Positions 42,571 through 64,000 of a stretch of 64,000 nucleotides of DNA are shown piece by piece (positions within the stretch are counted from its first letter, which is position 1; each line of letters begins with the position of its first letter). The DNA lies in the NCBI GenBank assembly GCA_000708835.1, contig DF237299.1:33660-97659 (forward strand), given 5' to 3'. The translations under genes were made by a program, and so were the position numbers. The notes under the pieces were generated by a model. That model had not been told where the DNA came from. It was given only the letters and a program-made list of their open reading frames with translations, and did not search any database. The DNA is from Klebsormidium nitens (Eukaryota > Plantae > Klebsormidiophyceae).

Positions 42571-45500
42571 ATGACGTTAAGGAAAACAAAAGTCGGTAGT
42601 GATAGAAAAACTGCTGGTACAGGGCACTCTGCTGGAAAGGGATTGAAAAACGTGAAGCTGAGGAATGCTGCAAAAGCTGACAAGCGAAGTCCACAGGTTA
42701 CGTACAGGGCCATCAAAATGAAGAAGAAGAGAGTTTTAAAACAGATGCGGAGTCTAGTTAGAGAGCATTGCGATACGGATGACAAAACTGGAGCCGCTCT
42801 GCTGTGGAGGTTGCAGTCACCTGCAAGCCAGCAAGACATTCTACAGGCCCTGAAGCAGCTTGGGGAAAAGGAGAAGTTGACTGAAACAGAGATGGTAGAA
42901 CTTATACAAAGGATTCCCCCGTACATTCAAACGATGCATGAGCGAGGGAAGAAGCTTGCAAAGGGGATCTGTTTGACACCTGATTGTGTGCAAATAGTGA
43001 CCGCCCGGAAGGCTGGAAAGCTAGTTGACAGGGCTGAAGTGGAGAGACAGCGGGCGGTGGAGAAAGCTGGAGCTAAAGTGAAGGAAGTAAACAAGCCTCT
43101 CTCCATTGAAAGGTCGCCTCCTCCAAGGTACTTCCTACCGTTTTCCTGCTGTCTTTTGTTGGAATTTTGGGCTTTCTGAATGCAGAAGGAAAGGTAATCC
43201 TAATGACCGAGGCCTCAGCTTGACTGGAGAGCGTATCTATGAGCTCATGATCATCTGGGCTGTGGACCTCAACGGTTTATATTGATTGTTGTGTTGTTCA
43301 AACCCTGTTCTGTTCGTTTTCATTGGAAGATATTGATGTAACTTCCTGAGAACAATGTCGGTTGGGACAATCACTTACGACACAACGCATCTTGTTCTCT
43401 TCGGTAGTGTGGTTCTCCGGTATCTTCCTCTCGTTTCTACAATGGAACATGCCCCCTGTCTCCACCGCAGCAAGTTTCCAACCCCTCCAAACGTAAATCT
43501 ACGTGTTTTGATGTAGGCGGCCTTTGGGGCAGACTCTTAGAGAGCTTCCCGATGTTAGCACTTCATCGTGCGACGACCACAACTATGCTATGGAGATTTG
43601 GTTCCGTTTTCATGATGTTTATGGGCCTGAAACCTTGGACGAGCACCAATTTTCCCTGGAGTGTCAGATCCAGTTGGACGCTGATATGGGTTGTGTGGTG
43701 GAAGCGCAGGTGAGGTCGCACATCAAGCCCTGAATATACGCCCATCAAGGCACGCAATGCTGAGCTGCTCTAGGCCAGAAGTAAGTATTTCTTGTGTAGA
43801 GATTGCAATATCACATGGACATAAGCAGGTTGTTTGAGCGCACCACTGCATGTTGCCAGCTAAAGACAACTGACAGGGAGGGGAACTGCCGATAAGGCGC
43901 TGTTCCAGTTGTGGAGACTTAATATCTCCCTTGAATAATTGCAGTGGGAGGAGGCGGCAACAGTCTGGCCCTTGCAGGCGGCAACGGCAAGATTAATTGG
44001 TACTCCGGATATCGAAGATTTCGTTGCTCGATGTCGCCTCGCTGTTGTCAACAGCAGTTCTCGCAGCACTCTTCTAAAAAGAGTTGCGAGCACCACCAGG
44101 TGGGTTTCAGGATTTCATAGCAGGGAGGGTAGACATTCCTGATAAGTGCTCAGCTGTCATCTAGATAGGCTGTGCTAGGGCGTTCGCAGGATCAGGTGGG
44201 GCCAATCCTGGCACTCTTTTAAACAATTGCAACATAATGCCCGAAAAAAAGGAACTTCAATGGTCGATGGTGGGAATCGATCCTAGGACCTTTCGGAAGG
44301 TTGGTACATTTCGGTACTTTCTAAAAGTACACCCGGACGGACCCAAAAGTACACATGTACGCTCCAAGTACAGCCCGCCGTCATGTCAGCACTGTCGGCT
44401 TTTCGGCATTTTGACGTTTGATCTCGTCATTTACTCAAATCTCGGCCAAATTGAGTTCTGATTTTTGCTACCGGTACCCCATCGGTAGCTCATCGCAGCA
44501 TACCAGTAGAAATTTTCACTTCCGCCTGCCAACCGGTCGGTGGTAAAAGTGGCCGGTACATGCAGATATTGAAAAGGGCGCCCCACGGAAGTCGGACCCG
44601 GCCCAACTTTTTTGAGGTGATTTTCGGGCACTGAGCCCACCTAGGGTACCTCTTGTGCACTGCGTTCCTACTTTTCAAAAATCTGATCGGATGCGGCCCC
44701 GAGAGGATATATGTATTTATTTTATTATATTTATCTGTATTAATTGATACCGTAAATACCCTGCCCAGGTCAGATCTCTGCGGAAATTCCGGAAGTAGGA
44801 ATGTGGTGCACTAGACTTTCCCAAGGCCTATTACCTGTGCCCAAATGTCGGCTTCCGAAAGTTGGAACCAAGGCCGACTTCGGTGGGGCGCCCTTTCGAA
44901 ATCGTTGATGTACCGGGCACTATTTCTAACTACCGGGCACTCGTCACTTTTGGCGAAAGTGAGGGTTGTACATTTTAAAGGTGCGAGTTGCGTACTCAAT
45001 GCAAAAAACGGAAGTCGATTTGAACCAGAAACGATGAAACGGCGGCTATTCTCGTATCGAGTATTTTTCTGCGAATATGCTGACACGATTTTGGCCCTAC
45101 CTGACCCTGCGAACGCCCGCTAAGTAGCATCTTTCTTAACGGGTAGCGCTGGAAGGAGATTATTTGTGGACTTTTGTTCGGATCTGATACTGGCGCCAAA
45201 GCTTTTTGTTCCTCTTGAACCATATGTCTTTCATGTTTCAGCTCTCACTTCTTTGCCTCCCTCCTGTGTCTTGCAGTATGAGCATTGATACACCTCAAGA
45301 GCAAATCACGGGCGATCTCATCAGGTTCATCTCTGAAGTGGAGCGTTACATGGTGACGTTGAGAATACCGGAGGAGTGGCCCACGTTGGGCCTGCCCATT
45401 CAGTTTGTTTCGCTTGTTGATCGGTGGAATCAGGAACCGCTGTCGAAATACATGTTGGTGAGTCTCTAAGCTGCTGTTGTTCATTTCAGTAGATGACATG

Positions 45501-47207
45501 AAGCAGGTGCACTCATGAGTTTGTTATGCAGTGATGAAGAACCTTTTCTGGGTCTCTGCTTGCTTCAGAAAAACTGTTACTTCATCTATGTTAAATGGGA
45601 CAGGAGCTACAACCTTCACGACTGTCAAACGCTGAAGAGGTTAGGACACTTCTCTCCACATGCCAAGCACATTCTTCCAAGGTTCTGGTGTTGCAAGCCA
45701 AGATTTGCACCAACTCTTTGGCCCCAGGCCAACGGGGCGATCGGTTGGAAAGAATCCTTCGTGCTGTGGCAAAGAGCTATACGGAAAGAACCCGGCTGAT
45801 CACTCCTCCAGGTAATCCGCTTCGGCTAAGCACTGATTGTTTGATTGTGATTCATGATTCTTTCAACGAGCTTGTTGACCTGGAAAGCGCCTCGTCTTGA
45901 AGGTCCTAGCAATCTTCATAGGCGATGGGAGTCTTGCCGGCGTACCTAGATTTAGAAGCTCTTCTTTTTTGCTGAGTCGCATCTCATGCAATTGCTATCT
46001 GCAGACTTCCTGTACATATACCCCTCGCCAACTGGAAACAACACCATCACGCTATGCGCAGAAGACCTGAATACGCTTCAACCCGGTGCTTTGTTGAACG
46101 ACAAAGTAGTGAATCTTTGGCTCAGGTGAGAATCCGTTACTGTCCACAGCTGCCAAAGCCTGTACTTGCAGTATCACCAGACTAGTTGCAAGTTGTCCCG
46201 TGCACAGCCATGGAGCAATTCCTCAAGCAGTAGGACCGTTGGCTGAAAGGATCAATGTCGGTGTTGCCGTCATCCGGAAGTGAGACACGGGGAGGAGGAG
46301 AGGGTCAATTGCTGTGGGGGATGTGGAACTCTTCCTAAATGTCACTTAATGGCGCTTCTGTTCTGGTCGGTTTGCTGGCTGCATGTACTGCTGATTGCTG
46401 CTACTGCCAAGATTGTCGAGAGAAGCGACTACTCAGCCTGCCCGGAACTGCTTGGAGTGATTGTTCAAATACTTTGAAACATGATGGTTTTGGATATCAA
46501 GCCAGTGGTTTTATTCGTGGGCAATGATCGTGCAGGCACATACGAAGCGGCTGCGAGAAGACAGCGGCCAACGTTCTCGTCATGGACTCGTACTTCATGA
46601 CGCTCCTGCACGACATGTTCAAGGCGGAAAGCGAAAACATAGGGGACGCCAACGACATTTTCAACAAGCTCCTGCGCTTTGACGGCTTCAAACTGATCTT
46701 CGAGCACACATTTGTCCTTTTTCCATATTGCCAAAGGTGGGTATGTCCAACACTGCACTTGATGGGCCCGATTAGTCCTGCCTCTATCTAAAAGGGCAGC
46801 TCGATTGTTGCAGGTTCGCGTTCCTAAGAGGAAATTGACATTTTGTGAGGCTTTTGACTTGTCCCTGGCCAATGGCAGTTCCTTCGGTTCTGAAAACGGG
46901 CTCCTGGGGTAGATGTCCTCGTGACTGACTGAAGCTTTTAAAATTGGACCAGAGAGGAGGATGTTCCTCTGCTAGCAATCTGATCAATCTCGAACTGTCG
47001 GTGTCATATTCTTTCTGTGCTGTCTGCTAAGACACATCCTATGGTTTCATACGTCTTAACTCTCTCGCGGTTCTGCAGGTCGCACTGGAGTCTGCTCCTC
47101 CTTAAGAACAAAGCCTGCAAGGGGAGCGCTCGTCAAAGTCCGGCAGCCCTTCTTCATTTCGATTCCAGGCCAGGGCTTCATCGGTCCGTTGATACGTTGT
47201 TCCGAAG
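42571..47207 (+). CDS. Multi-exon protein with unknown N-terminal region and partial Ulp1/SENP (peptidase C48) domain; 3' end unresolved
   Basis: Phase-consistent exons 42571-43127, 43517-43709, 43945-44099, 45277-45457, 45604-45811, 46005-46125, 46536-46736 and 47079-47207. Motifs: ITLCAEDLNTLQPGALLNDKVVNLWL, MDSYF, FVLFP, SHWSL (catalytic His) and LHFDS (Asp). No Q..DCG exon found. Confidence 0.75.
44178..45118. mobile_element. 941-bp non-autonomous DNA transposon in an intron; 28-bp TIRs, 4-bp TSD GCTA (Sola2-like signature)
   Basis: GGGCGTTCGCAGGATCAGGTGGGGCCAA at 44178-44205 matches the reverse complement of 45091-45118 at 26/28 positions. GCTA at 44174-44177 and 45119-45122. Internal inverted arms (~44574-44612 and ~44858-44897) surround an AT-rich centre. 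Confidence 0.85.
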
Positions 47208-47541
47208 GTACGATCGCTTGAAGCTCATCACTGGTTCAATAAGAAACTACAAAGGGCTCTGCAGCCCTTGTATCGAAGACGTTGAACGACCTTCTCACCC
47301 TGTCACAAATGAGTCTAAATGCCCAGGTCGGAATCACACCCTCAGCCTCTCATCCAACAAGCTTGCTCGCTTCTGATTGGTTCACGGATTTTGCCCGGTA
47401 TACACCGTGAAAGTGACTTAAGGAGATAGTTCCTAAGCCTTCCGACCAGTGTTAGTGGCTTAAGGAGATGGTTAACACCGCAGCTACAGACAATATTCTT
47501 CTACCGGACACTCTCCAGACCCGAAGATTCCTGAAGGGTCT

Positions 47542-48098
47542 GCAGCACAATGGCGGCGCAGTGAGCAGCGTTTTAGGGCCTTAGGAGCTTGCAGCCACAG
47601 GGCGCCATTACTTAGGAGCGTTAGCGGCACAATGGCGGCACAGTGAGCAGCGCTTAGGGCCTTGGGAGCAGGGCGCCACTATCTAGGAGCTTAGCAGCAC
47701 AATGGTGGCGCAGTGAGCAGGCGCTTAGGGGATTGTGGCACCAAGCCATGGTAGTGAGCAGTCATGAGCTGCGGCGCAGTGGCGGGCGGTCTTGAGGGGG
47801 TCTGGCTCACAATGCCACCGCTGTGAGCAGCACTTGGGGGTTCGCGGCGCAATGCCAGGGCCGTGAAGCCAGCATTCAGAGGTTTTCAGCGCAATGCTGG
47901 GGCAGTGAGCACTTAGGGGTTTGCAGCGCAAGGTCGGAGCTGTGAAGTGCTCTCTTAGGGGTTCGCAGCGCAGGGCAGAGCTGTGAGGTGCTCACTTAGG
48001 GGTTCGCAGCGCAAGGCCAGAGCTGTGAGGTGCTCGCTTAGGGGTTCGCATCGCAAGACAGGAAGCTGTGAGGTGCTCACCCAGGGGTTTGCAGTGAG
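47542..48098. repeat. Imperfect tandem repeat arrays (70-82-bp units x~3, then ~41-43-bp units x~5) sharing a GTGAG...CTTAGGG core
   Basis: GC(A/G)GCACAATGG(C/T)GGC(G/A)CAGTGAGCAG begins at 47542, 47624 and 47694. GCTGTGAGGTGCTC(A/G)CTTAGGGGTTCGCA recurs across 47902-48098. Confidence 0.8.
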
Positions 48099-48716
48099 CT
48101 GGGTGCGTGCAAGAGCAAGGTGAGTACCCCACCCACTGGATGTTCAACTTTACGCCATCTGTTCCTAGACAATGAGGGGCTATGAGCTGCCTTCTTAGGA
48201 ATTTGAAAGCAGGCGGGGTGAAGCAAGTTGAGTGCCAGACAGGCGGGGTGAGCAAGTGGTACAGCTGGAATTCAGATCGCTCTCTGAATCTTGCAACTTG
48301 ATGGTCCTTGCAGATGGGGGTAGAAGCTCAGGTGGCACCACACAGCCTCTCAATTGACAGGTTAGCTACCACCTCTTCTCTGAGAAGGAGTTGTAGGTAC
48401 GATTTATCACTCTCATGTCAGACCTGCCCCTCAGAGCACTCTCCAGTTGTACTTGACGTTCTTTTCAAAATTGCTGCATTTCATCTGGCATTTCATCTGA
48501 GCAGATACACGGATAACGAGCGTTTTTCACAAAGTATCTCAAGTTGAGAGATGTCAGTTTAGGACCCCTAGGGAGACTTTCTAAAATCCTCCGTGTATCC
48601 GCGCCAAGTGCCTCCGCAGTTTATTATGATGTTTACACACCATGCAAAAGGTGTGGTGTGTCTCAGGGAGCTGTGTCTCAGAGTGGCGCTCATTTGGAGC
48701 CTTTCGCTTTCCTCAG

Positions 48717-51700
48717 GTTGGTGCCTCTGGCGTCATACCCAGACTTTGTTGTGGATCAGATGCTGCTTCTTAGCCGCTCTGAGGAAACTCAGAAGCACTG
48801 CCACAGCTGCAACCACAGGCTGTGGGACCTGCAGGGGACGGAGGGCGGCACAATCCTCGTTTGCAAGAAGCGAGCAGCGGTAGACCGGGAGGGGTTTATC
48901 ATATGCCAAGCGCAGAACTGCCCCCAATACGCCGGAGCCGGTGACCAGCGGTCACGCAGGATCTTTTGCCTGAGATGCACGACACTGCGGGAGAGGGGTG
49001 GGGGGGCAATAGCTTTCGATGCCTGCTTCGGTGTGAGGGAGGGGGGCGGCTTCGAACAGCTGCTGCAGGAGTGCCTTCATTGCAGGAGCGGGTCTGGCAA
49101 GCAGTGCAAGCGGGGAGACACAGACGACAGCACCTGTCCTAGGTTGATCCACCAACGGGATTTCGAGAAGCCTCAGAAGCGGACGGCGCCCATCCCTGAT
49201 ACCAAACCCCTAGCCCCTTACGCATACCCCGGCCTCCGTTACATGGCCTCCCACCTGCCATGGCTCCCTTTGCCTGATCAGTGGTTCTCCACCCATGGAC
49301 TCGCTCCAGAGCCCGTGCCCAGAGTCCGGCTGCCGTGGGAGCCCTATCCCCACCACTGGCTGTTCTTTTCCCCAAAACAGCCCCCCAAAGGGACGCCTTT
49401 CCACACACTCCTTCCTACTTCCCCAAAGCACGGGCACCGCACTCACCTGTGGCCATTCCCAGAGTTACCCCCTCAGGAGTCTGTGTTCTACGTCCACCCA
49501 AGCAGCTGCCTTCCACCAGCCTTCTTGGCATGCGAACCAGCCTCTCTCCCACCAGAGGGCCTCTCCTACGAGCCCCAGCCACCGTACTCTTCCGGCGTCT
49601 TCTTCTACGGACGGGACCCCAGTCTGTTTGCTCTCTTCGAAGCAGCAAAGGATGCCCCACAGTCGGAGTCAAGGAAGCATGCAAAGAGATCTCCTGAAGT
49701 CAAGGTGAGCAGCTTTGCTTCAGCTCAAATGCAGACAGTGTCATGTGACCCTTGAGCTCACGTGCTGTCTGACTTCAACTTGACCCTTGAGCTCTCCTGA
49801 TGATGTGCTGTGTGACTTGAACTTGATCCTTTAGCCCTTCCGGAGACGTGCTGTGTGCTTCAACTTGGCCCTTGAGCTCTCCTGGTGATGTGCTGTGTGA
49901 CTGTGAACTGATCCTTGAGCTCTTTTGGTGACGTGCTGTGTGACTTGAACTCTGCTCTTCTGCCAGAACACTGGTTTGACTTGGCCACACTGTTCCTGTC
50001 CAGGTGCAACGCTGCGAGGAGATCCCTGCTGCTGTCTACACCCGCGAGCTGCCGTTGCTGGTTGAGGCCTTCAGGGCCAGGGCTGCGCAGGGCTGCCCCC
50101 TGCACACCGGTCCTCTGCGGGGCAACTACATGCTCATTGCTAACATCGAGCAGAAGTGGGAGGGGGAGGGCGGGGAGAGGGCTCTGCGAGCTCGCATTGT
50201 TGAGCCGGACCTGAAGACTGGGGCTGGGGGAAAGAACCCTGTCCGGACCCTCTGGCCTGTAAAGGTCCGGTTTGGGGTGGCCTCGGGGGGTGGCACAAGC
50301 CTGACGTGCAACTGCAAGCTCAAAGGCCCGGAAGACAAGTGCTACCACGTTGGCGTGCTGGAGGCTCTGACCGACCTGAGCACGCTGGACGTGTGGACAA
50401 CAGGCACGACGCATGAAGGGGTGGAGACAGTCCGGCGGGGGGCACGTGCCGTAAACTGGAGGGCTTTGGAAGGACAGAGCACAGTGGCTCTGACTTACGA
50501 AGCTGCTGCTGTCACCATCTACATTGTCCACAGCGGGTCCTCTGGGACGCTGGTGGCCAGGCGAGAGCTTGGCGACAGCGATGATGAGGCGCAGACGGCC
50601 AAGCCGAGGGGGAGGGGGGGCAAGTTCAGGGGGCGGGCGGTTAAACAGGGGCAGGCGGCTAACCCCGGAGACGAGTGGTTCTGCGAAGCGTGCACATTGG
50701 GGCAGATGGATCTGCACGGGCGGTGCATACACTCGTATCAGCTGGCGGGGCTGACCAAGGAGGAGTGGCAGCCGCAGGGGGAAGGTGTCCGGGTGCCTGA
50801 AACTGCGGAGGAGGTGTGGGGTCTCAACTTTGGCGTCAAGCCTTATCCCAAGCTGGGAACAGCAGCCACTATTGTGTGCACTTCCTGCCCCAGAGGTGCT
50901 GACAGAGAGTCTGCTAAGGTAACCCAGGCAAGGACGTGCCCCCACCTAGCCAGCCTGTCCCCCATTCCCACAGTGACCCCCCGAAGCGCAGAGGACCTTC
51001 GGACGGACCCGATCATCTTCGGGGAGCATTTGAAGGTTGCTCACGTGTGCACCCATGAGTGCCAGCTCAGGCCATGCGGCCAGCTGCCCCCGAGGGATAA
51101 CGAGCTCAACCAAGCAGCTGAGCAGGGGACCAGCCTGGAAGACACGCGCCGCTGGAGCCGGGAGGGGCGTTTCTGCCAAGCCCGCCCCGTCACCCCAGCC
51201 CCTTGTGGGGCGCCGTGGCATCTGAAATGGAACGGGGAAGGCAGGCTGATCAAAGCGAACGCGCTGCACGCAATCGACATCGGCACGTGGTGGTGCGGCC
51301 GCTGCAGGATGGGGTGTACCCTGAAGTACGACGCCGCTGCGGACGGTCTCTACTACCTAACTCCACAGACCCTCGTCACCCAGGAGGTGCTGAAGAGCAT
51401 GGAGGATGACCTGCTGCAAAAGGCAGCCTCCTTCCAACAGATTGTGCGTGGCTGGGAGGGCAAAGCCCTGAGGACGTTCACAGGTAATGGCCAGTGTCGT
51501 GCTTCTGAAAGCAGCTGTTGTCTGACCGCTGTACTGCTTCCTCTGGTGTCCATGCTGATTCCCCACCCTGGCATTGAAGTGATTATTACCATTTGCGCCT
51601 AAAANNNNNNNNNNNNNNNNNNNNNNNNNNNNNNNNNNNNNNNNNNNNNNNNNNNNNNNNNNNNNNNNNNNNNNNNNNNNNNNNNNNNNNNNNNNNNNNN

Positions 51701-54700
51701 NNNNNNNNNNNNNNNNNNNNNNNNNNNNNNNNNNNNNNNNNNNNNNNNNNNNNNNNNNNNNNNNNNNNNNNNNNNNNNNNNNNNNNNNNNNNNNNNNNNN
51801 NNNNNNNNNNNNNNNNNNNNNNNNNNNNNNNNNNNNNNNNNNNNNNNNNNNNNNNNNNNNNNNNNNNNNNNNNNNNNNNNNNNNNNNNNNNNNNNNNNNN
51901 NNNNNNNNNNNNNNNNNNNNNNNNNNNNNAAATCGAGCGTTACACGCAACCTGCGACACTTTCAACGAAGACTGTAATAAAGAATCCAACCAGGAAAACA
52001 GGAATGCTAGAAGGGATTAGATATCAGATCAGCTTTTGCTCGAATGCAGATGGCGAGCAGGACACCCGCATGCTGTGTGAGGACAAGGCGCGTCAGGGCA
52101 TCGAGCGCTACTTGCAGCACTTGGATGACCACCTGGTCGAGCAGTGGCGGAAGGAAGCCAGGCTCGAGCCCACCAGCGTCGTGGAGAGACCCCCTCACAA
52201 GCCAGAGTTCAAGCCAGAGAGCGGGCAACCTGGAGGCAAAGGCTACGTCTTGTTCGTCCCCCCTGAGAATCCTCTTGATCTGAAGGACGCCCTGCTCACA
52301 AAGTTCTTCAGGGCCGATGACCGAGTTGGGGGACATGCTGGGGGCGATTACGAGGGACGGGTTTCTGGCTATAATTTTGAGAAGGAGCAGTGGAAGGTAA
52401 GCTCTTGCCAGTTCTATTGTGCTACGTGAGGATGGTCGTGTTTCATTGCTGCATTGGCATGGTCTGCGCACATGATAGCGGTTCAGCCCCCCAAGGGAAT
52501 CTCTGAATCATCCTTGTTTCTGCACATCTGCCTCCACAGTTCAACACAATACTGGGCGCGTTGTGAGTAGCATGGTCTAGCGGGAGCTGTTGCACACAGT
52601 ATCATGCATACGAGGGTGAGCTGGCACCTTCAATAGAGCCTGCTTTCATGGCAGCTCTCCTTTTGCAGATTGCGTATGACGACGAAGACCGTGAAACCAT
52701 GTGCTTCAAGGAGCTGGCCCCTCTTGTGCACACTCTCCCTGAGGGCTACGTTGACAACAACCCAGATCCCACCGGCAGGGGGCACCCGGTCCCACCCTTC
52801 GCTCAAACAATTGGGGCAAACGTGCTCCTTCAAAGACCGACTTGGAATAGAGAGTACAGGGGACAGGTGATGGAGCGGGTGGGGCCCAGGCCGCTCAGCA
52901 ACGGGGAAAGCGGTTATGTGTACCAGGTATGGCTCTTCATTCCTTGAGCAGCGAAGCGCCTGTCTGCATGGGGCTTTCCTGGTTGCTTGGATGCATTTCA
53001 AAGGGTTAGCAACAGTTCAACGCTTCAATGGAGACTTGGGTACTTCCAGGCTTGAGATCCTGAAATCCCTTCAGCTAGGGGGTACTAAGGTACATCCTTC
53101 CTGAACCCCAGTTCAGAGCCCAGCCCACTCGCACTGATAACCAAGGTGTGTGTCTTTCTGGGCGTCAAAGCCAGCCCTAAAGCACCTGCTGTGAGTCTGG
53201 GCTTCGTCCTTTGGGGCGACTGCAAGATGGAGCCATGGCAGATATGCCTAGGCAGACCAACGGACAATTGTATCGATGTCACAGTCCTGGAACATATGGG
53301 CAGCAAACCATTGAGAGTATCGTCCCCGTCTTTCAATTTGCAGGTCAAGTTCGAGGACGACACGGTAGAAGACTTGGAGTTTGAGGAAGTCAAGGCAGCG
53401 CGCCAGCGATTCCAAGACAGCGAGTTTGGCAACAGCGACGCCCCCACGCTGACCCAGGTGGATCTTGAAGACATCAACCGGCCCTCAGCCCTGGGAACAT
53501 GTGCCCAGTGCGAAGCCGCTGGCGGGCCGCAGACGATTGTGATTGATGCCACGAGAACCCTGGCCCTCAAAACCGCAAAAGATCGATACGGGAAGCCATT
53601 TTCACTCGTCCCTTTCGGTCATCAAACGGTCAGGTCCTTCAGGCAGCCCCACTGAGCCCCTACTCTCTCCAGTGCCTCTGCTCTGATGAAGACCCCGTGT
53701 TACTCCTGCCTACAAAGGGGAGCAAGCAGACAGTCACAGAGAAGATGAAGCTGATTCCACGAGGCGTCAAGCGGAAGAAGGATAAGAAGACCGGGCAACC
53801 GATCGGACCCAAGACCGGACCGCGCACTCAGCTCCTGCGCTGGAGCCAGGCGCTTGTCATGTGGCCGGAAGATAGCAAGAAGGTCACGGCAGGGACTCCA
53901 ATCGAGGGCAACGAGGTCTTCAAGAGCGCAGCAGAGTATGTGGTGAGCAGCAAAGCCCTTCTTTGTGACCGATCTCTTACATGCGTAGGGGCCATAAGCT
54001 CTTGTGATTGCAAGTGCAGATGCACGGCCTGCACATATACACGAAAAGCGAGCTTTTTCCAGAGAGTATCCTCAAGTTGAGAGATGCCACTTTAGCCTCC
54101 CTAGGGAGACTCTCTGTCTCTTTTGATTATCTGCACATGCGTAGGGGCCATAAGCTACAACGTGCTCTTGTCTCTTCCTTTGTGATCCTGCTATTGGACA
54201 CGTGAGCCACGTCCTTTCTCTGTGGTTGTGATCATCTTGCGCTTGTTTGCAGGCTATGCTGCCACAGCTCCCCCGGTGCGTCCGGCGGTTGGTTGAGTAT
54301 GTCGTGGGGGCTGGGCATGGAATCACCGTGCGGAAGATGGGGTGCCCGGAGGGGCCCTGGAGGAACCTCTTCTACCATCTCGGGTCGCCTGAGTCAGATG
54401 ACGTCCTCATCTGCAAGGACGTGCAGAGCACAGTGTTGCGGTTGCTCCTGGGCAAGAGTGCTGGGCCTGTCACACTCACTGCAGATCAGCGGAAGGATCT
54501 GAGGGAGAAGTCCCCAGTCCTGGCTAAGGTCTTGCAGGAGGGGGCGCAGATGTCCGATGGAGGCTACTGGATATCAAAGGAGTTGCTCGACGCTCTCGAG
54601 TCGCTCCTCATCCACCTTCTTCAGATGTCCTACTTTGCGGTGGACCTTGACTGTGGGACTCGGGCTGTCGAGCTGCTAAAGGAGGCACTCGCGGCCTCTG

Positions 54701-55759
54701 CTGACTGGGGGGCACAGCGCGGGGAGCACCTGGAGCGCTACGTGGAGAAGATAGAGAGGCTCATGTACCGGAAGTTCTGGTTCAAGTTCATGGAAGAGAA
54801 GGCATGCAATCTGGGGCCTAACGCTCTAAGCTATGCCCAAAACGCAGCGCGCTTGTGTTCCTACTCGGTTGTTCGGCCCGTCACGCAAAACCCCGCCCTG
54901 GACAAGGTGAACGGAAGAGCGCTAAAGAGTCAGAGGAACAAGAAGTGCACAGGGAACTACGCCCCCAACGTGGAGCCACGGTTGAAGGTAAGTCCAACTG
55001 CGTCACAACCGGCAATGTTCCCCTCTTTTCTGAAGCATAGACGCTCTCTGGATAGTTCTGATTGCATGCAAGGGCAGCTACTTGCTCTTGCACGTAGAGA
55101 AGCTTATGTGTTTGTCATATGCAGAAATCCCTCCAGAAAAAGGTCGAGAACTCGCAGCGGTACATCGACAATCTTGCGATTATGTCCTGCGGGCACGGGG
55201 TTGTACTGGACTACATCATTGGTCTTGAGCCGGAGTCTGTGAAAGATGTCATTGTATATCTGGAGACCCGATTCAAATACCACCCCCCCAAGCTCATCAT
55301 CAACGACAACTCCTGCCAGGTGGAACGCAACGGAAAGCTTGTAAGATCCCCTCTCTCCAGCCTTCTCTCTGCTGCACTGCTGCAACTACCCCTCGTAAGC
55401 AAGCACTGTCTCTGATGCCATTTAGTCATGCATCTTTTGCTTATTCCCCTGCTCATTATCCTCCTTTCCTGCTTTTCCAGCGCAACCCCAACTTCATCGC
55501 GGGGTCATCTTTCTGTCTGGATGGTTTCCACGGATATGGGCACCGGTGCACGAGGCACTACATCCTGGGAGAGCGCTTTCCGGAGGCAAAGGACGAGACA
55601 TCAGTCGTAGAACATATCAATGACTGGCTGGCGGACTGGGAGAAAGTCTTCTACAACATGAGGACGGACACCCTCCAGCTTTTGCTCAACTTCATCATCC
55701 GTGCTCGAAACCACAAGAAGAACGAGGCCTTCAGGTCCCGACTTCTGCGTCTGAATTAA
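48717..55759 (+). mobile_element. KDZ-superfamily (Kyakuja-Dileera-Zisupton) DDE transposase gene, multi-exon, with accessory zinc-finger and Tudor-like domains; start not located
   Basis: Phase-consistent exons 48717-49704, 50004-51483, 52050-52396, 52669-52927, 53344-~53628, ~53673-53942, 54253-54987, 55125-55340 and 55481-55759. KDZ motifs: CAQCEAAGGPQTIVIDAT (D at 53545), MSCGHGVV..EPESVKDV, PKLIINDNSC (D at 55305), LDGFHGYGHRC, VVEHINDWL (E at 55610). SWIM-like motifs CNCKLKGPEDKCYH and CEAC..RCIH. Confidence 0.85.
49748..49955. repeat. Intronic ~42-bp imperfect tandem repeat, about 5 copies
   Basis: CCTTGAGCTC..GA(C/T)GTGCTGTGTGACTTGAACTTGA recurs inside intron 49705-50003. Confidence 0.85.
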
Positions 55760-56091
55760 GGGTAAGAGCACGCTGCACTTACCGTCCACTTGCATTTGGA
55801 TTGTCTTTGCCACCTCTCGTCCAGTCTCATTAGACCCCGTTTGTTTGCATTTCTGTAGGGCACACACCTAATGGGACTCTCTGAAGGTGCGACTCCGTAC
55901 CAGGCAAGGGTCTCCTGTGTATTCCATGTTCTCCAATCTGTTTGTTCAGCTTCGGGCCTTCTGCAACTTGTATACGTTGTTGTCTTGCTCGGCCTCTGCG
56001 GTACTGGCTTTAGGCATCTACAAGCAGCAGCAGCAGCTGAAGGATGTTGCGTCTCTCCCGAAGCAAGTATATTTCCCTTACAGGAGCGGCG

Positions 56092-56870
56092 TCACAGGCT
56101 CTGCATCTCCCTTCTCCATTGGTCGAGCTTCGTCCGTGAGAACGGGAGCTTCTGCTTCTTGCTCTGCTTTGCCAGCGTGGAACGGTCGGCCTCCGGCTGA
56201 AGGCCCAAGTACCTTTTGCGTGCCTCAGCCCAAGCGAACAGTGTCAGGTAGTCAGGAATCAGAGGCGGTTTGGATTTGTCTTGTAGATACTCTAAGACCC
56301 CATTATCAACCCGTCCGAGATTGCCCTCTCTTGCTGAGCGATTCGCGTCCAGACGTTTCTGTAGCTCCTGGAGCCGTGCCAGGTTCTTTTCGCGCTTTCC
56401 CGCCCACACACGCTGCTTTGCCCTCGAGCTCGACTGCCATGTGTGCTTGATGTCGTCGACCAGCCATGGAAGCCCTGCAATTGGGAGGTTGGTGCTGGCC
56501 TCACGCGGATCCGTTGATTTCGGTGCCCTCTGAATGACCACGTCCAATACTGGGACGTTGTGGTTGAATTCGAGGCTTCCAACCCTCACTCTCATCCTAT
56601 AATCAATACTTACAAGCCGCGGGCGACCGTTAGGCTCTTTAGGCAGATATCGCAGTCTGAACTGCAGATTATCGTTGTCACGAATCCTGTACAAGAAGCC
56701 CACGGGCGTGCCACTGATGACCCTCTCAACGTTGGGTGGCAGTATTCGCGCCAGCTCTTTCACCATGATAGTGACCGCCTTTCCGACCAGTGCAGTAGCC
56801 AAGCTGACCACATCATCCAAGTGCTGCCCTGGAGGCACATATATCTTTGTGTCAATGTCTTTTGAGACTC
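56092..56870 (-). CDS. Second (paralogous) nucleotidyltransferase copy, C-terminal part; 5' part lost in assembly gap
   Basis: Reads (R)VSKDIDTKIYVPPG...VLDVVIQ...GKREKNLARLQEL...MQSL*. About 21 amino-acid differences over ~205 aa versus the copy at 56891-57507. Confidence 0.75.
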
Positions 56871-56890
56871 NNNNNNNNNNNNNNNNNNNN

Positions 56891-58504
56891 AGGAATCAGA
56901 GGCGCTTTGGAACTGTCTCGTAGATACTCCAAGACCCCCATATTAACCCGTCCAAGATTGCCCTCTCTTGCTGAACGGCCAGCGTCCAGTCTCCTTTGTA
57001 GCTCCTGAAGTCTATCCAGATTTTTTTCGCGCTTTCCCGCCCACACACGCTGCTTTGCCCTCGAGCTCGACTGCCATGTGTGCTTGATGTCGTCAACGAG
57101 CCATGGTAGCCCCGCAATTGGGAGCTTGGTGCTGGCCTCGCGCGGATCCGTTGATTTCGGTGCCCTCTGAACGACCACGTCCAGCACAGGGATGTTATGG
57201 TTGAATTCGAGGCTGCCAACCCGCACCCTCATTCTGTAATCGATACTTACTAGCCGTGGGCGACCGTTGGGCTCTTTAGGCAGATAGCGCAGTCTGAACT
57301 GCAGATTGTCATTGTCACGAATTCTATACAAGAAGCCCACCGGCGTGCCACAGATGACGCTCTCAATATTGCGCGGCAGTATTCGTGCCCTCTCTTCCAC
57401 CATCATAGTCACTGCCTTGCCGACCAGTGCAGTAGTCAAGCTGACCACATCATCCAAGTGCGGCCCTGGTGGCACATATATCTTCGTGTCGATGTCCTTT
57501 GAGATCCGGATCCCGCTGTCGAAGCGCCTCATTGCATCCCCCCCGGTCACAAATATGCGCCCCAGAGATGCTTGACTGAGCCGCCCGTCAATTGCTTGTA
57601 TGGTCGCGTTGATGCACGGCCGCAGCGCTTCTATCAGCTGTGACTCACACATCTCTACCGCTGCTGCACCGCCTGGGAGATGATCGAGCGCCCTCAGAAG
57701 CAAACGCCCGATAATACCCTCGTTTCTATTTGCGAATTCTGTGCCGTCAAAAACCTGTACGAATGATTTTGCCAGGCCCTCATACCAAGCTGCGGCCTTC
57801 TTGCCACCCAGCCGTCGATCAAGATGCCTTTTGATCACCTGTCTCCTTATCTCATCAATATTGTACTTTTTCTCTGGTCGCTTCGACTTGATGAGTTCGA
57901 GGAACGTCACACACCCCTCGAGGTTAAGGTAGGGTGCATCTCTCGAAACATAGGTGTTTTGGAAACGACTGGGCACAAAAGCATCTCCCAGATTCATGAC
58001 TTGCACATCAATGTATGTTTTCTTCCGCTCTCCCAGTGCTATCCCGGTCAGGCGTGCTGGATATGGTGTCTCTGTGAGGACCATGGGCACAACACAGTCG
58101 CTAGCTTTTACCACTGTGTACACTCGCTTCTTTCGAATATCTTTGTTCATGCGCAATTTGTCAAGTAGCACGTCTTTGAAGTATTTGCAAAGCAGCGTCG
58201 AAGCTTGGATTGCGGCTTGCTCACTATTAACCAAGACCCACATGTCCCAATCGGCAGGCTCAAAGGCACTATATTCCGATTCAGATGAAATGGCCTGGGG
58301 ATCATCGTTGATGGCGCACAGCATGCTTTGACTGCCAACAATAACATGGCACCAGCCCTGAGACCGGATCCATTCGACAAACTGGTCAATATATGGCTGT
58401 AGAAGAACAGTTGTGTTGACACGTTTCTGGCGTTTGATAACGTCCTCTGCATACAACTGTTCATCAGGAACGACTAGGAGGGGTGGCAACGGGCCTTTGG
58501 ACAT
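56891..58504 (-). CDS. Intronless tandem two-domain Pol-beta-superfamily nucleotidyltransferase, resembling giant-virus poly(A)-polymerase-like NTases; 3' end in gap
   Basis: ATG at 58504 and more than 535 open codons. Domain 1: VIVGSQSM (58331-58336), ADWDMWV (58244-58252), YIDVQV, RPEKKYNIDEIRR. Domain 2: FVTGGDAM, SKDIDTK (57482-57496), VLDVVV, GKREKNLDRL. Confidence 0.8.
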
Positions 58505-58533
58505 TCTGAAAGACTCCACTAATATAGTCCGAT

Positions 58534-58785
58534 ATTATCTATGGGCTTGTCCTGGCCTGCACCTGCACAGGGGACTAAAGACCTGGGTTTCACCTGAACA
58601 CCGAGCTACTCCTCAGGACTCATGCCAAGCTATGGTTTATTCTGATCTCGCTCATAAACACCACGATTATCTATGGGCTAAATTTAGCCCTGGCCTGCAC
58701 CTCAACAGGTGGCTAAAGACCTGGACTTCACCTGAACACCGAGCTTCTCTCTGGACCTCATGCCAAGCTATGATACACCTGACCA
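58534..58785. repeat. Imperfect direct repeat, ~132-bp unit x2, immediately upstream of the nucleotidyltransferase ATG
   Basis: ATTATCTATGGGCT..CCTGGCCTGCACCT..CTAAAGACCTGG..TTCACCTGAACACCGAGCT..CTCATGCCAAGCTATG begins at 58534 and 58666. Confidence 0.85.
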
Positions 58786-60153
58786 GTTCTCAGCATTGGG
58801 TTTCCCTAACATCTATAGACCTGATCTCATAGGAAACCCGCAAAGCATCGCATGTCAACCTTGATCAGTTCTGCGACTATCCCTCAACTGCAACTGGCAA
58901 CTAGCAACTAGCAACTAGCAAGCTTGGCAAAGGCACAATAAGTAACGTCACCACGTGCAAGTATCCTTCCGCGAGTTGCCACAATGAGAACACGATCTTA
59001 TGGCATGTTCACCCGCCGAGCAGGGCGCGAGGAGTCCTTCGCTTGCATCATGACGCGCAGAGCAGCAAGGCAATCCATGAGGCTGCACACAAATAAGATG
59101 TTTTCAGGTTTGACCCACCTTTGCAACGAATACAAGTGCGAGGGGGAGGGGCTGCAGCAGCTGAAGCTAGTGGTGAAGATGCATGTGGGTGCATGCAAGC
59201 ATTGATCGAGGCAGCAAGCACTGGGCGTGACTTGCCGTTTGTGCGTTTGAATCCCGAGATTCCTTTCCCAGCGTTCTCCTTCCTGGACCCTTTGGATCCA
59301 GAGCCCTGCCTGACTACACTGACAACCAAGGTGTACGAATGTTGGGCATCAAAGCACTGCTTCGAGTATGGGCTTCGCCTGAGGGCGACTATCAAGGGTG
59401 CAATGGCATTCGCTTACAGCACCACAAGCGCCTGATGCGGGGCTCTCCGTCCTCCTGAAGGCTTTGCCTCGCTAGTGCCTCGGTACTTCAGTGCCGTGCA
59501 TGGGAGCTGGTGAAGCTGAGGCTTTGGTTCCTTTCGTTCAGCATACAAACGCTGGCTACTCGCCGTGCAACTTGACGATATAGGTGCTGCGCTTAGGAGC
59601 TGAAGTTGATGGAACTTCACGAATTTCAGCTTAGAACTAGCGGTTCTCAGCTACAGTAACCTGAAAACATCTGTCTTGGAGAGGCTTCCAATCCGATACA
59701 AGATAGCTTGATGGAACATGCGGTACCAAAGTGCTCACCACTGATGCAGTTTCGCCATGTGATAGACGGCTTCCTCCTCATGAGGATCCGCAGCCTGTGG
59801 AGGAGCCTGGCTTGTGGGTGATGTCTCCTCAAAGCTACTGCACCAAAGGCGGCAGAAACATGATCAAGGGTGTGACATGGTGGTCCTGATGCTCTCAAGA
59901 AACAGACCAAGCAACAAGTGACAGTGCATGTACCCCATTGATCATGACACTTTGATTCACTCGACAAGCAGATTCACCTATTGCTGATCCAGCAAGCAAT
60001 CTCACCCCCCTTCCCAATTGGGTGCGTGCATTCCTGTGATGACGGTGGGTGTGTTGGGCTGCCACAGCATCTGTGACAGTGCAGGGGAGCTTGCTGGCGA
60101 AACCTCCGCGTCGCGCTGCCTGTTTTCACCAAGAGCAGGAAACTGCAAAGGAG

Positions 60154-60678
60154 TCAATGTTCAATGAGTGCAGGCAGAGATTTTATTACAGCAGCTGAGA
60201 CAAGTTCAGGATTGCCATGATGATACCGCAAGAAATCAATCACTGCAGGAAGAGGTCCTCTTTCAGCGGAGCTCTGCAGGTGGAGCAAATGAGTTCCTCG
60301 CGCTTCTTCTTGATAGGCCATTGAGGAGTGTATACTTACAATCTTGAAGAACGAGTCCATATCTTCACCCACCTGCAAGGATAAGGAAAAAGACAGTAGT
60401 GAACTATTGGTATCTTAAAGCAGGGTCAGAGGAAGCGGGAATTGCAAGCGCACAGTGATAGCCATCTGTGAAAGCTTACCATAATGCGCACCAAAATGAC
60501 CACTCACTCCTGAGAAGTTGCTGGGGGGATCCATTGGGCAGCTTGAAGTGCGCTCGGCGCTCGTTGTCAGATCCACCCGGATCCTTTTCCGCGGCTCGCC
60601 GGCTAGACGGGAGATTCGGTGAATAATGACGCGGAGCGGGGTCCCTTTGAAGCTACTTTCGGACTGGCTTCCACTCAT
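60154..60678 (-). CDS. Possible small multi-exon hypothetical gene
   Basis: ATG-led exon MSGSQSESS...SNFSG followed by a ga|gtgagt donor, phase-compatible with exon VGEDMDSFFKI (cag|gtg ... att|gtaagt). The remainder is not resolved. Confidence 0.3.
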
Positions 60679-60733
60679 GTGGAAGCCAGGGCTTTATAAG
60701 GCTGAGGTGAGAANNNNNNNNNNNNNNNNNNNN

Positions 60734-61017
60734 AGGGGTGCCGGGGGTGCCGGGGGTGCCAGGGGTGCTGGGGGTGCCTGGGGGTGCCGGGGGTGCCTGG
60801 GGCCTCCCATCTTGCGGCCCTCCCACCCCTTTGATGCACGCGCGAGCGCGCGAGGGGGCCCACATAGGCGCTCGCGACGTCCGCTTGTGCGATGAGGAGA
60901 TCGACGGTCAACTCACAAGTAATCAGTTGAGATCGACGGTCTACTCACAGGTAACCATTTGAGATCGACGGCTCCTTCAGGTTCATGGAGGTGACGGATG
61001 GTTCATGGAGGTGACGG
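60734..61017. repeat. Cluster of short tandem repeats: 9-bp GGGGTGCC(G/T) x~7, 32-bp unit x3, 20-bp unit x2
   Basis: 9-mer array at 60734-60800 abuts a gap. GAGATCGACGG at 60897, 60929 and 60961. GGTTCATGGAGGTGACGG at 60980 and 61000. Confidence 0.85.
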
Positions 61018-61342
61018 GTGTTTACATGTGTTGACGGCTTGCCCTTCCGGTGATCGACGGTGTGTTTGAGTGTGACGGACGGCTCACTTTCAGGCTCCTT
61101 CGCGCTAAGCATGAGCAGAAGCCTATGTTGCTGTTTCTACGGCAATATGTCGTGCTCCTTGTCTCACACGCCACAGGGCGCCATTTTAACAGACCCCATG
61201 GCCAAGTTCCTTGTCGTAGAAGCAGTCCAGGAGCTCACTCCATGTTCCGGTTCCCACTCCAATGTCTTCACCTTCCCACAACAGCGGCACTGCAGCAACC
61301 GTTCACCAGACACTTGCTTTTCTGGGCAGTCTCTCCTGACTG

Positions 61343-64000
61343 ATGGCCACTCTGCCCAAAGCGTTCATTGGACCTGGTTTGCAACGGTGTCTCGTTTACG
61401 GTGGGGAGCTATACTTTGCAGCCCGGCCAGAGGACACAGCTGGTTGTTCCATCAAGCCTCGGAAGCGGAAGCTGGTGAGTGCTTTGCAGCGCACAACGCC
61501 TGCAGAGGATGCCGCTCCCAGCGATCAGAGCGCGGCTCACCAGCTACAGCACGCTGCTGAGACTAGCAATCGGAGGCTGACCCATGCCCTTGTGAAGCAA
61601 CAGGAGCTGGAGTCTGCTGTTATCTGGGACAAGAGCCTGCACCTTGCATCGCAGGCTTGCAGCTCGAGGCCAGATCTCTTTTCTCGTGCTGTCATGCGCT
61701 GCTTTACAGAGGGTGGGGCCCGCCGCAGCGAGGCACGCCTGCTGGACGAGTTGGCAAATGTGTTCATAGAGAGCCTGGTGGTTTACGGGAGCCCGTTAGG
61801 CAACCTCCCTCCACTGGAAACCTGGCCCGCCCCGTGCCTTTTGACGTGGAGGGTTGACGGCTCAAACTACACTGCCCCTCGGTCGGGCCAAGGCTTAGCA
61901 GAGTATCTGGGTTATGTGGCCGACGACGAGTGGCATGTGGTCGAGCAGCAGAGTGCTTGGATGCGCTGCCTGAAGCCGGTAAGTGCTGGTACCAGCAAGT
62001 GCTCAACTCNNNNNNNNNNNNNNNNNNNNNNNNNNNNNNNNNNNNNNNNNNNNNNNNNNNNNNNNNNNNNNNNNNNNNNNNNNNNNNNNNNNNNNNNNNN
62101 NNNNNNNNNNNNNNNNNNNNNNNNNNNNNNNNNNNNNNNNNNNNNNNNNNNNNNNNNNNNNNNNNNNNNNNNNNNNNNNNNNNNNNNNNNNNNNNNNNNN
62201 NNNNNNNNNNNNNNNNNNNNNNNNNNNNNNNNNNNNNNNNNNNNNNNNNNNNNNNNNNNNNNNNNNNNNNNNNNNNNNNNNNNNNNNNNNNNNNNNNNNN
62301 NNNNNNNNNNNNNNNNNNNNNNNNNNNNNNNNNNNNNNNNNNNNNNNNNNNNNNNNNNNNNNNNNNNNNNNNNNNNNNNNNNNNNNNNNNNNNNNNNNNN
62401 NNNNNNNNNNNNNNNNNNNNNNNNNNNNNNNNNNNNNNNNNNNNNNNNNNNNNNNNNNNNNNNNNNNNNNNNNNNNNNNNNNNNNNNNNNNNNNNNNNNN
62501 NNNNNNNNNNNNNNNNNNNNNNNNNNNNNNNNNNNNNNNNNNNNNNNNNNNNNNNNNNNNNNNNNNNNNNNNNNNNNNNNNNNNNNNNNNNNNNNNNNNN
62601 NNNNNNNNNNNNNNNNNNNNNNNNNNNNNNNNNNNNNNNNNNNNNNNNNNNNNNNNNNNNNNNNNNNNNNNNNNNNNNNNNNNNNNNNNNNNNNNNNNNN
62701 NNNNNNNNNNNNNNNNNNNNNNNNNNNNNNNNNNNNNNNNNNNNNNTGGGAGACAGGCAGAAGGACAACCTACCTGCAATGCATGGAGACGAACTGACAA
62801 TTGCCACGTTCCACTCGCAGGCCCTGCCGCGCTTCGTTTGGCTGCATGTCAAGGAGTTGTTGGTGAGGCAAAAGAAGGCGTTGGACCTGTTGGTTAGGGG
62901 CCAATCTGCGGAGCAGTTTGCGTCTGTCTCGCTGAACAATGCAGAGAGAGAAGCAGCCCAGCGGCGCAACAGGCTGGGCAACTACCAAGATAACACCCTG
63001 CTCGAATTGGAACAGAGGGTCCGCCAGGAGTTGGCCGCCTACCAGGACCTGCAGCGGGGCAATGCTGGACTCCTCGACTGGTACCGGACCACAAGCTTTG
63101 TCTTGACCGGTCACACGGCATCCATCAGACCGCTCCTCCAATCCGAGTACCCTTCCCAGGCAACTCTGGACAGCTCGGTCTTTGGGGCTGATTGCCTCGA
63201 GGAGCTGACCTCGAGCACAGCGCCTTTCTTTGTCAAGTTTGATGGGTGGGTTGGCCCAGCCTGGGGGATATTCTGGGACTGGGTACTGACGGGTGGTCTC
63301 AAGCAGTGGCTGCCTGAAGCAGACTCCCTGGGTCGCTCCCTCGAGCTGCTCAGGGACCGGGAGCTGGGGGCGGTCCTGCAGCAGTGGGAGGATACGCGGG
63401 ACGGGGACCGCTTCCAGCTGCTCAAGAGCTGGCTGTCTGGGCCCGGTGCCATCTTCCCTGCTCGAGTGGCTGGCATGGTGGGCGAAGCGACCTTGCCCCC
63501 AGTCTCCGAGACGGCTCCTATCCACAGGCAGCTCAGGGTGAGAGCCTCCAAGCCTCCAATCAAGTTTGCAGATCCATCTTCCTGCTGCACTCTCTCTGCA
63601 TTCCCGGCCTGCCTGTCTTTGAGTCAGTGTAGCAAGAAGTCTGCGAACATGCATTGCACAGCATATTTTGTCTGTGTTTGCGCCATGCTCTCTGTATCTT
63701 GATCACATCACGTGTCGCTTTTTCGAGCCATCTGTCTACGAGCCACTTTTGAACTGGCCACTTGCATCCAAACGTGGATGCTCGCGCTTCGATGAGGAAT
63801 GGCAGTGTCACTTTGAAAGTCCGTGCGTCCTCCATGGTGAACCTGTATTACCCAGGCTTGTCATTGCCCCTAAGCCAACATCTCCAATCCAGAAAACAAA
63901 AACCTGCTGGTGCACGACATGCAGGTCGTGAACCCCTGGCGGGCCGACTGCGTGTTTCAGCCCCGTGACGAGGCGCTGTTCGGGCTGCCCGGCAAGTCTG
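61343..64000 (+). CDS. Large multi-exon hypothetical protein, interrupted by a 737-N gap and running off the window
   Basis: Long open exons at ~61.3-61.98 kb (ending ccg|gtaagt) and 62747-~63537 (ending agg|gtgaga), plus a new exon after tttcag at ~63961 (PRDEALFGLPGKS). No recognisable domain. Confidence 0.6.

Follow-up and report, generated by a model that had tools for sequence, protein, structure and literature searches.

A KDZ-like transposase gene recurrently linked to a giant-virus-type nucleotidyltransferase gene in Klebsormidium-type algae

Zisupton, one of the KDZ (Kyakuja, Dileera, Zisupton) transposons, reportedly combines a SWIM zinc finger with a DDE core, and some Zisupton elements are said to carry a Ulp1 domain as well. 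Zisupton and Kyakuja elements occur in Chlamydomonas (PMC8226300). Fungal KDZ transposons carry TET/JBP genes, according to the account of Iyer et al. (2014) given in PMC12730594. Kyakuja has CA..TG ends without terminal inverted repeats and 7-bp duplications, and Zisupton and Dileera have terminal inverted repeats and 8-bp duplications (PMC12730594). Here we analyze 64,000 nucleotides of the streptophyte alga Klebsormidium nitens (contig DF237299.1, positions 33,660 to 97,659; hereafter called the window, to whose numbering positions refer unless another locus is named), in which a KDZ-like transposase gene and a nucleotidyltransferase (NTase) gene of a giant-virus family are arranged tail-to-tail. 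We will show that this linkage is real, non-random and new. It recurs at related loci, and no earlier report of it was found in the literature searched.

We give about an even chance to one joint reading, in which the right-hand 16 kb of the window (~47.6-64.0 kb) is a recurrent three-gene module of Klebsormidium-type algae and represents either an old lineage of KDZ transposons with few copies or the decaying copies of such a lineage, joined in a specific association to a virus-derived NTase. The module would consist of a KDZ-superfamily DDE transposase gene preceded by CTTAGGG arrays, one or more intronless NTase genes that lie tail-to-tail with it and belong to a giant-virus (Nucleocytoviricota) family, and an orphan gene divergent from the NTase. 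The corresponding features of the window are the following.

47580 to 48205, plus strand: tandem arrays with periods of ~42, 71 and 83 nucleotides, directly upstream of the KDZ-like gene, with six copies of CTTAGGG.
48517 to 55759, plus strand: KDZ-like transposase gene, intron-rich, ~1750 codons, recognized from sub-threshold Pfam matches, motif columns and collinear loci.
56092 to 56870, minus strand: NTase copy B, the last 257 codons and the stop, with no internal stop; the 5' part is missing at a gap.
56871 to 56890, no strand: assembly gap between two different NTase paralogs, the sequence being discontinuous and out of register.
56891 to 58519, minus strand: NTase copy A, an intronless open reading frame (ORF) of 543 codons; the 3' end is missing at the gap.
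61343 to 64000, plus strand: orphan gene "unk" (KFL_003500170), partial, severed by the scaffold end and interrupted by a gap (62010-62746) in a probable intron.

The related loci used for comparison include L009 (from Logan), L008 (from JGI) and L005 (K. nitens scaffold DF238305.1). An NTase gene lies tail-to-tail with the KDZ gene, 0.13-1.3 kb away, at six of the seven loci with a readable downstream flank, namely the window, L009, L002/L003, L006, L039/L040 and L041, and these loci come from two KDZ clades that are ~40% identical to each other. The co-occurrence test that the earlier note had proposed is thus passed by the KDZ and NTase genes. It is failed by the KDZ gene and the Ulp1-like gene that the note had grouped with it, since the two stand together at no other KDZ locus with upstream sequence.

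In an alignment of one KDZ exon (exon c), clade I is formed by the window, L009, L008 and L038, and clade II by L002, L006, L039 and L041, with 77-91% identity inside clade II. The NTase genes do not follow this division. The window and L002 are 84% identical in the NTase and ~40% in the KDZ gene, while L002 and L039 are 73% identical in the NTase and 82% in KDZ exon c. The NTase tree and the KDZ tree disagree, and this conflict points to a partnership that was exchanged, that was formed twice or by repeated targeting, or that was blurred by gene conversion.

The arrangement resembles that of the fungal TET/JBP-carrying KDZ elements (Kojima 2025, PMC12730594) in its persistent link to the gene of a nucleic-acid-modifying enzyme, and in a partner gene that is shared or appears to be exchanged between transposon lineages; Kyakuja, too, is without terminal inverted repeats. 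It differs from them in that the partner is a giant-virus-type nucleotidyltransferase of the Pol-beta fold instead of a dioxygenase, and in that the host is a streptophyte alga. Compared to the fungal elements, the copy number is also very low, no ends or 7-8 bp target-site duplications were seen, and the Pfam matches stay below threshold.

The KDZ-like gene encodes Cys clusters at the N-terminus (CxC4-like and, by eye, also SWIM-like), segments resembling Tudor domains, and a core of the DDE type. It was searched against Pfam and PDB exon by exon, unjoined, as was the Ulp-like gene discussed below. The CxC4 profile PF18717 is matched by the ORF at 50004-51599 (E=0.011) and, over the same profile region, by its L009 homolog P0018 (E=0.053), both below the 26.9-bit cut-off, and the position of the match N-terminal of the catalytic core is the expected domain order. 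The KDZ profile PF18758 is matched, at profile positions 70-137, by the homologous exon of L002 (E=0.0065) and L006 (E=0.0081), with 16 bits against a cut-off of 26.6. Two SWIM-like Cys/His patterns can be found by eye, with no Pfam SWIM match. A Tudor-type match has an E-value of 2e-4 in L009 and 0.08 in the window, which weakly supports the proposal that the transposase reads chromatin. In PDB sequence searches, neither the core ORF nor the N-terminal ORF had a meaningful match.

C.H and DN.C are invariant in the exon alignment of eight loci, D.FHG..H.C and a downstream E are invariant in five loci from both clades, and an ID motif upstream of DN.C is kept in clade I. From these alignments, the invariant acidic residues are predicted to be catalytic. 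The gene is collinear with L009 at ~75% nucleotide identity over 48714-55766, and its amino-acid identity is ~55% with L008 and ~40% with L002, L006, L038, L039 and L041. Compared with two relatives, the window copy has a single break of the frameshift type, and the blocks compared contain no in-frame stop; elsewhere L008 has one stop and L006 two. Of the intact transposase that had been claimed, the conserved D, DN.C, D.FHG..H.C and E motifs stand, and the frame break and a gap tell against it.

As to the resemblance to Zisupton, it consists of the Cys-cluster N-terminus followed by a DDE core, the presence in green algae and the Ulp-like sequence nearby in the window. Unlike in Zisupton, the Ulp-like exons are located on the upstream side of the arrays and have no counterpart in any of the other copies, and no Pfam SWIM or C48 match, 8-bp target-site duplication or terminal inverted repeat was found.

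Two repeats inside the gene may be mentioned here. The first KDZ intron contains a 43-nucleotide tandem array (49760-49951). A 45-nucleotide direct repeat, 87% identical, occurs twice in the window, at 48538-48582 and 54071-54115 (0.1 expected for its 16-mer); one of the copies falls where the first KDZ ORF begins, the other in the interval between two ORF pieces further along.

Between the window and L009, the ratio of nonsynonymous to synonymous divergence (dN/dS) of the KDZ-like gene is 0.14 at a dS of 1.25 over 1336 codons, and the gene is under purifying selection. Such a history would also be expected of a domesticated cluster, that is, a KDZ-derived host gene kept beside a virus-origin NTase and the orphan gene, syntenic and inherited vertically with few duplications. 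We consider this a possible but rather doubtful explanation. It agrees with strong selection over dS above 1, with intron positions conserved among the window, L009 and L008, with the very low copy number and with the lack of terminal inverted repeats or a target-site duplication. L009 in particular resembles an orthologous locus with the same neighbor, and L002 and L006 are collinear through intergenic DNA. In its copy number, introns, long purifying selection and conserved neighbor the KDZ-like gene is indeed like domesticated transposase genes. It is unlike them in having several decayed copies with stops or a frame break, flanking genes that differ from locus to locus, and a tree that conflicts with that of the neighboring gene. 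Domestication is also at odds with the sharp left edge shared by some copies (see below), with the one KDZ copy that lacks an NTase and with the three NTase loci that lack KDZ.

The NTase genes are the second component of the module. Copy B lies tail-to-tail with the KDZ-like gene, ~330 nucleotides away. Copies A and B have a protein identity of 90% (~88% over a 300-nucleotide repeat pair), a dS of 0.42 and a dN/dS of 0.14, and both are incomplete in the assembly. The duplicated, intronless, virus-like NTases of the earlier note are therefore borne out as two intronless, virus-like paralogs, and not as one continuous stretch, since a gap with discontinuous sequence separates them. The dN/dS among the algal copies is 0.08-0.17, and the genes are under purifying selection; the L006 NTase carries one stop. 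Part of the K. nitens protein KFL_003500150 matches the NTase ORF with 100% identity.

In the family, 25 columns are invariant among 16 homologs, including GGDAMRR and DIDTK, which together make up an intact Pol-beta-type GG..D.D motif in the second lobe. The AlphaFold model (pLDDT 82.4, pTM 0.81) has two beta-alpha lobes of the NTase fold. Its best match among predicted structures is A0A1X9VNS9, an uncharacterized 764-residue Mimiviridae protein (Foldseek E 1e-19, TM 0.69, 596 columns), and its best match among solved structures is the Megavirus/Mimivirus polyadenylate synthases 4p37/4wse (E 6e-7, TM 0.22); weaker structure matches include some insect-virus and swine-virus proteins. Homologs with 23-32% identity were found on 20 giant-virus contigs in IMG/VR and on 8 metagenome contigs. 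A metagenome scan with the NTase gave distant giant-virus-like loci only and no new algal copies.

The viral poly(A) polymerases (vPAP) of the Mg561/R341 type are homodimeric, self-processive enzymes, defined here by two subdomains of nucleotidyltransferase topology, the first with the catalytic carboxylates. In Mg561 and R341 both subdomains have this topology and the catalytic residues are in the first nucleotidyltransferase domain, D2 in Mg561 (PMC4402537). The algal NTase is like these Mimiviridae polyadenylate synthases in having two such subdomains in one chain and a Pol-beta-type carboxylate motif. It is unlike Mg561 in that this motif is located in the second lobe instead of the first nucleotidyltransferase domain, D2 (PMC4402537). 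It also differs from Mg561/R341 in having no sequence-level match in the PDB search and a TM of 0.22, A0A1X9VNS9 being far closer. In its motifs and overall fold it conforms to the uncharacterized giant-virus family of the A0A1X9VNS9 type. On the modeled structure, the NTase is probably a sister family of vPAP and not an ortholog, because its invariant motif is in the second lobe and that of Mg561/R341 in the first. Judging from the fold and the catalytic motif, its most likely function is the template-independent tailing of RNA 3' ends.

This kinship raises the question of whether the region could be an integrated giant-virus remnant (giant endogenous viral element, GEVE), or else a set of chance neighbors brought together by mis-scaffolding. 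Apart from these algae, members of the NTase family occur in giant viruses, one KDZ copy has a D5_N ORF nearby, and four gaps together with a chimeric gene model make for a fragile assembly. The genes next to the NTase, however, match none of the 10-kb flanks of the 20 giant-virus loci, the KDZ and orphan genes have no IMG/VR relatives, the KDZ gene has introns, and the G+C content is host-like. The viral remnant was rejected on the ground that the NTase is the only gene of the window that matches giant-virus loci. The gene order is not an accident of scaffolding either, because it recurs on independent contigs from other samples. Taken together, these two explanations are highly improbable.

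We now return to the KDZ transposon lineage and to what is transposon-like about it. It is the differing flanks, decayed copies, sharp left edge, CTTAGGG arrays and gap-rich scaffold end that give the region such traits. The repeat arrays that had been reported are indeed present. Six of the seven forward copies of CTTAGGG in the window are found at 47653-48037, in the orientation of the KDZ gene, while 3.9 copies per strand would be expected in 64 kb. Similar clusters lie upstream of KDZ in L002 (four copies), L006 (two) and L039 (four). Upstream of these arrays, the similarity between L002 and L006 breaks off sharply at one point, and contig L039 begins at the homologous base; this edge is shared in clade II only.

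The genes around the module vary among the loci (TIR-NLR, gag, MIP, NB-ARC and SET), and one metagenome sample contains at least five KDZ loci that differ in their flanks. In L002, the module is flanked by a TIR-NLR-like gene (1-764) and a retrotransposon gag (zf-CCHC) ORF (18680-19837), the latter adjoining the sharp left edge. In L041, the interval from the 3' end of KDZ to the tail of the NTase contains a SET/PRDM2_PR-domain ORF (3044-3505, minus strand), possibly one more passenger or a fusion. Upstream of KDZ in L038, a virus-like D5_N (primase-helicase N-terminal) ORF and an NB-ARC/TPR gene are found at 2481-2918 and 4367-6049. In L039, a fragment of ~55 codons that resembles the NTase C-terminus (6835-6999, minus strand) precedes the full NTase. 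It lies between the KDZ end and a tandem array of 79 nucleotides x 11, and parallels copy B and the gap of the window.

L039 also bears on another explanation, namely that KDZ elements insert preferentially just downstream of NTase genes, independently in the two clades, and that the NTase is not carried. Here CTTAGGG arrays are found on both sides of KDZ, one of them toward the NTase, and a short piece of an NTase 3' end adjoins the KDZ end, where the window has the partial copy B. That two deep KDZ clades adjoin closely related NTases, and that the NTase-orphan pair exists without KDZ, would also fit such a landing site. No target-site duplication or element end was seen, though, and in L008 the KDZ gene adjoins an aquaporin gene. 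Moreover, the purifying selection on copy B makes it more likely that this copy belongs to a complete gene concealed by the gap. We regard the landing-site explanation as unlikely.

It is important to weigh these findings against a number of results that speak against a transposon lineage with its own NTase. In the downstream flank of L008 an aquaporin gene takes the place of the NTase, and L004, L007 and L042, which form the most divergent NTase clade, have the NTase and the orphan gene with no KDZ. The tree conflict could have arisen by gene conversion among the NTase paralogs, with no need for mobility, and the KDZ loci of the metagenome may stem from one genome or from several species. The copies are old (dS of 0.4 or more) and the KDZ gene is intron-rich, as in a domesticated gene. 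The family is also very small, the core exon having seven cluster representatives, all short and none of them the 1755-residue K. nitens model described below, among 1.84 billion proteins. In the exon-by-exon search, the window's own catalytic exons gave no match to PF18758, and no KDZ or CxC4 match at any locus reached the Pfam gathering score.

Further points of the same kind concern the ends of the element. A comparison of all plausible left and right flanks of the window, L008 and L009 for terminal inverted repeats yielded nothing beyond 7-12-mers at chance level, no shared right end was found after the KDZ stop in three aligned loci, and no target-site duplication was seen. This agrees with the earlier note, which had likewise found neither terminal inverted repeats nor a target-site duplication. 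Finally, L039 has six more copies of CTTAGGG between KDZ and the NTase, which could place the NTase outside the unit.

A more specific proposal is that a streptophyte-algal KDZ lineage captured a giant-virus-derived, RNA-tailing NTase as a passenger, which was then swapped between deep clades. We put this forward tentatively, as clearly less probable than the association as such. The even-chance reading itself already implies that the KDZ gene product would move DNA, the CTTAGGG arrays would be its putative binding sites, and the NTase would travel with the element rather than mark its landing site. The association would have been re-formed or exchanged between the two deep KDZ clades. The NTase itself would be poly(A)/poly(U)-polymerase-like and may act on element RNAs or on small RNAs. 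The notion of an algal KDZ lineage with a nucleotide-adding enzyme as cargo is upheld in part, namely by the recurrent KDZ-NTase linkage; the occurrence of NTase and orphan gene without KDZ goes against it.

The third component, the orphan gene, has three homologs only, and its exon order is kept in L002. It has no Pfam match and no IMG/VR relatives, and the AlphaFold model of its product is unusable (pLDDT 39.7). In the window, L002, L004, L007 and L042 it is found upstream of the NTase at a distance of 2.8-4.3 kb, in divergent orientation. The pairing thus holds in five of six loci, including those without KDZ, and the orphan gene is absent from L005. Within at most 10 kb of the orphan-NTase pair, the Klebsormidium-like metagenome contigs L004 (970-2849) and L007 (17254-18455) carry TnpB/Fanzor-like ORFs (Pfam Cas12f1-like_TNB, HTH_OrfB_IS605).

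The KDZ family is sparsely represented elsewhere as well. The window copy is the only one seen in K. nitens, and the N-terminal ORF has two matches in the protein search. Among the 45 ORF pieces of the window scanned against Pfam, matches were sub-threshold only, and Rfam and tRNA scans gave no matches.

Since the region is interrupted in several places, the state of the assembly has to be considered. The window has four N runs, all at positions given beforehand, and the earlier claim of four assembly gaps in the island is correct in full. The last base of the window is also the last base of scaffold DF237299.1 (97,659 bp; the last 100 bases match exactly). The scaffold terminates inside the region, and any island therefore leaves the assembly on the right.

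The first gap (51605-51929) is probably intronic, with both flanks belonging to one gene, because its flanks are collinear with a single L009 gene (window 51485 and 52040 correspond to L009 3222 and 3386) in which the counterpart is a non-ORF interval of 164 nucleotides. The ORF on its left closes with a stop immediately before the gap.

At the second gap (56871-56890), the right flank is copy A, broken at codon 543, and the left flank is copy B, beginning at the position of copy A codon 339. The third NTase paralog of K. nitens, on L005 (88% nucleotide identity), ends at the homologous point, which suggests an unassembled repeat just downstream of the break in copy A and L005. Two independent K. 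nitens contigs are thus broken at the same homologous NTase position (L005 7678-7680 and window 56891). An allelic overlap of the two NTase copies was also considered for this gap and was ruled out by the dS of 0.42 and by the third paralog on another scaffold.

The third gap (60714-60733) is in a spacer beside a 9-nucleotide microsatellite, and none of the related loci aligns across it. The fourth (62010-62746) probably falls in an intron, because the L002 homolog and model P0027 both have the two bordering exons in direct succession.

These gaps also affect the public gene models. P0001 (KFL_003500150, 56092-58084) crosses the second gap and is a chimera of NTase copies A and B. A 1755-residue model, which begins left of 46092 and ends with the KDZ stop (55759), fuses Ulp-like exons with the KDZ gene and looks wrong on the sequence comparison. 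In the spacer, a 163-residue model on the minus strand (58998-60678) is without support. The features that remain, in the spacer and on the left, are given below.

42571 to 43179, plus strand: ORF of 202 codons at the left edge, with chance-level Pfam matches only.
45956 to 47373, plus strand: Ulp/SENP-like exon pieces (45956-46126, 46528-46788 and 46984-47373), recognized from a SENP7 match and from motifs seen by eye.
58520 to 61342, no strand: spacer between NTase copy A and the divergent orphan gene, with short direct and tandem repeats and the gap at 60714-60733.

No conservation of the spacer was found in the related loci. The ORF at the left edge has no counterpart in any related locus, and its membership of the module is without support. 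Further left, the host genes that had been noted on this side of the island are confirmed as ordinary ones, a Neurochondrin gene (29270-31507, minus strand, E 4e-67) and a Nop53-like exon (33397-33963, plus strand).

For the Ulp-like pieces, the sole PDB match is that of the first exon to SENP7 (E=0.07), at the start of the catalytic domain. Inspection by eye shows what resembles the beginning of a C48-type domain, along with motifs that are candidates for its His and Asp boxes. Searched exon by exon, they gave no match to Pfam C48 (PF02902) at E-values up to 10. A Ulp Cys box was found in no frame of the window, where a box split by an intron is possible. The "DCG" at ~47.7 kb was rejected as a Cys box, as it lies inside a tandem repeat with the wrong spacing. 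No Ulp-like sequence was found near KDZ in L002, L006, L008 (7 kb upstream), L009, L038, L039 or L041, and the Ulp-like and KDZ sequences are joined solely in the public K. nitens gene model.

These results bear on the original proposal of one giant KDZ transposon of 21 kb or more, from 42571 to the window end, carrying the Ulp1-like gene, the transposase, the NTases and unknown genes. The public 1755-residue gene does span the Ulp-like exons to the KDZ stop, all four gaps are within this stretch, and the Ulp1 domain said to occur in some Zisupton elements would fit as well. The Ulp-like sequence, on the other hand, is missing near KDZ in L008, L002 and L006, and the CTTAGGG arrays separate the Ulp-like exons from KDZ and, in clade II, are located inside the left edge. 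There is in addition no Pfam C48 match, no Cys box and no end. We consider a single element of this size very unlikely; the claim of a 21-kb transposon found no support, with no terminal inverted repeat, target-site duplication or right end found and the scaffold ending inside the region. The same applies to the Ulp1-like gene as a member of the unit, for it stands beside no other KDZ copy with upstream sequence and lacks both the Pfam match and the Cys box. As part of the reading to which we give an even chance, the Ulp1-like gene and everything left of ~47.5 kb would be ordinary neighbors of the KDZ-NTase module, and the insertion may have cut the Ulp1-like gene short.

The public annotation of this locus can thus be corrected at two points, the NTase chimera across a gap and the fusion of a SUMO-protease-like gene with a transposase. 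The giant-virus family to which the NTase belongs has no studied member, and the algal genes, being conserved and intronless with the catalytic motif intact, may provide a cellular setting in which to learn the function of that family. If the proposed capture is true, the NTase would be the first KDZ passenger enzyme besides TET/JBP, it might act on element transcripts or silencing RNAs, and genes would have flowed from virus to transposon to host. A second, unrelated nucleic-acid enzyme tied to KDZ would make the hitch-hiking of enzymes a general habit of the superfamily, and the locus would document a virus-to-alga gene transfer near the origin of land plants.

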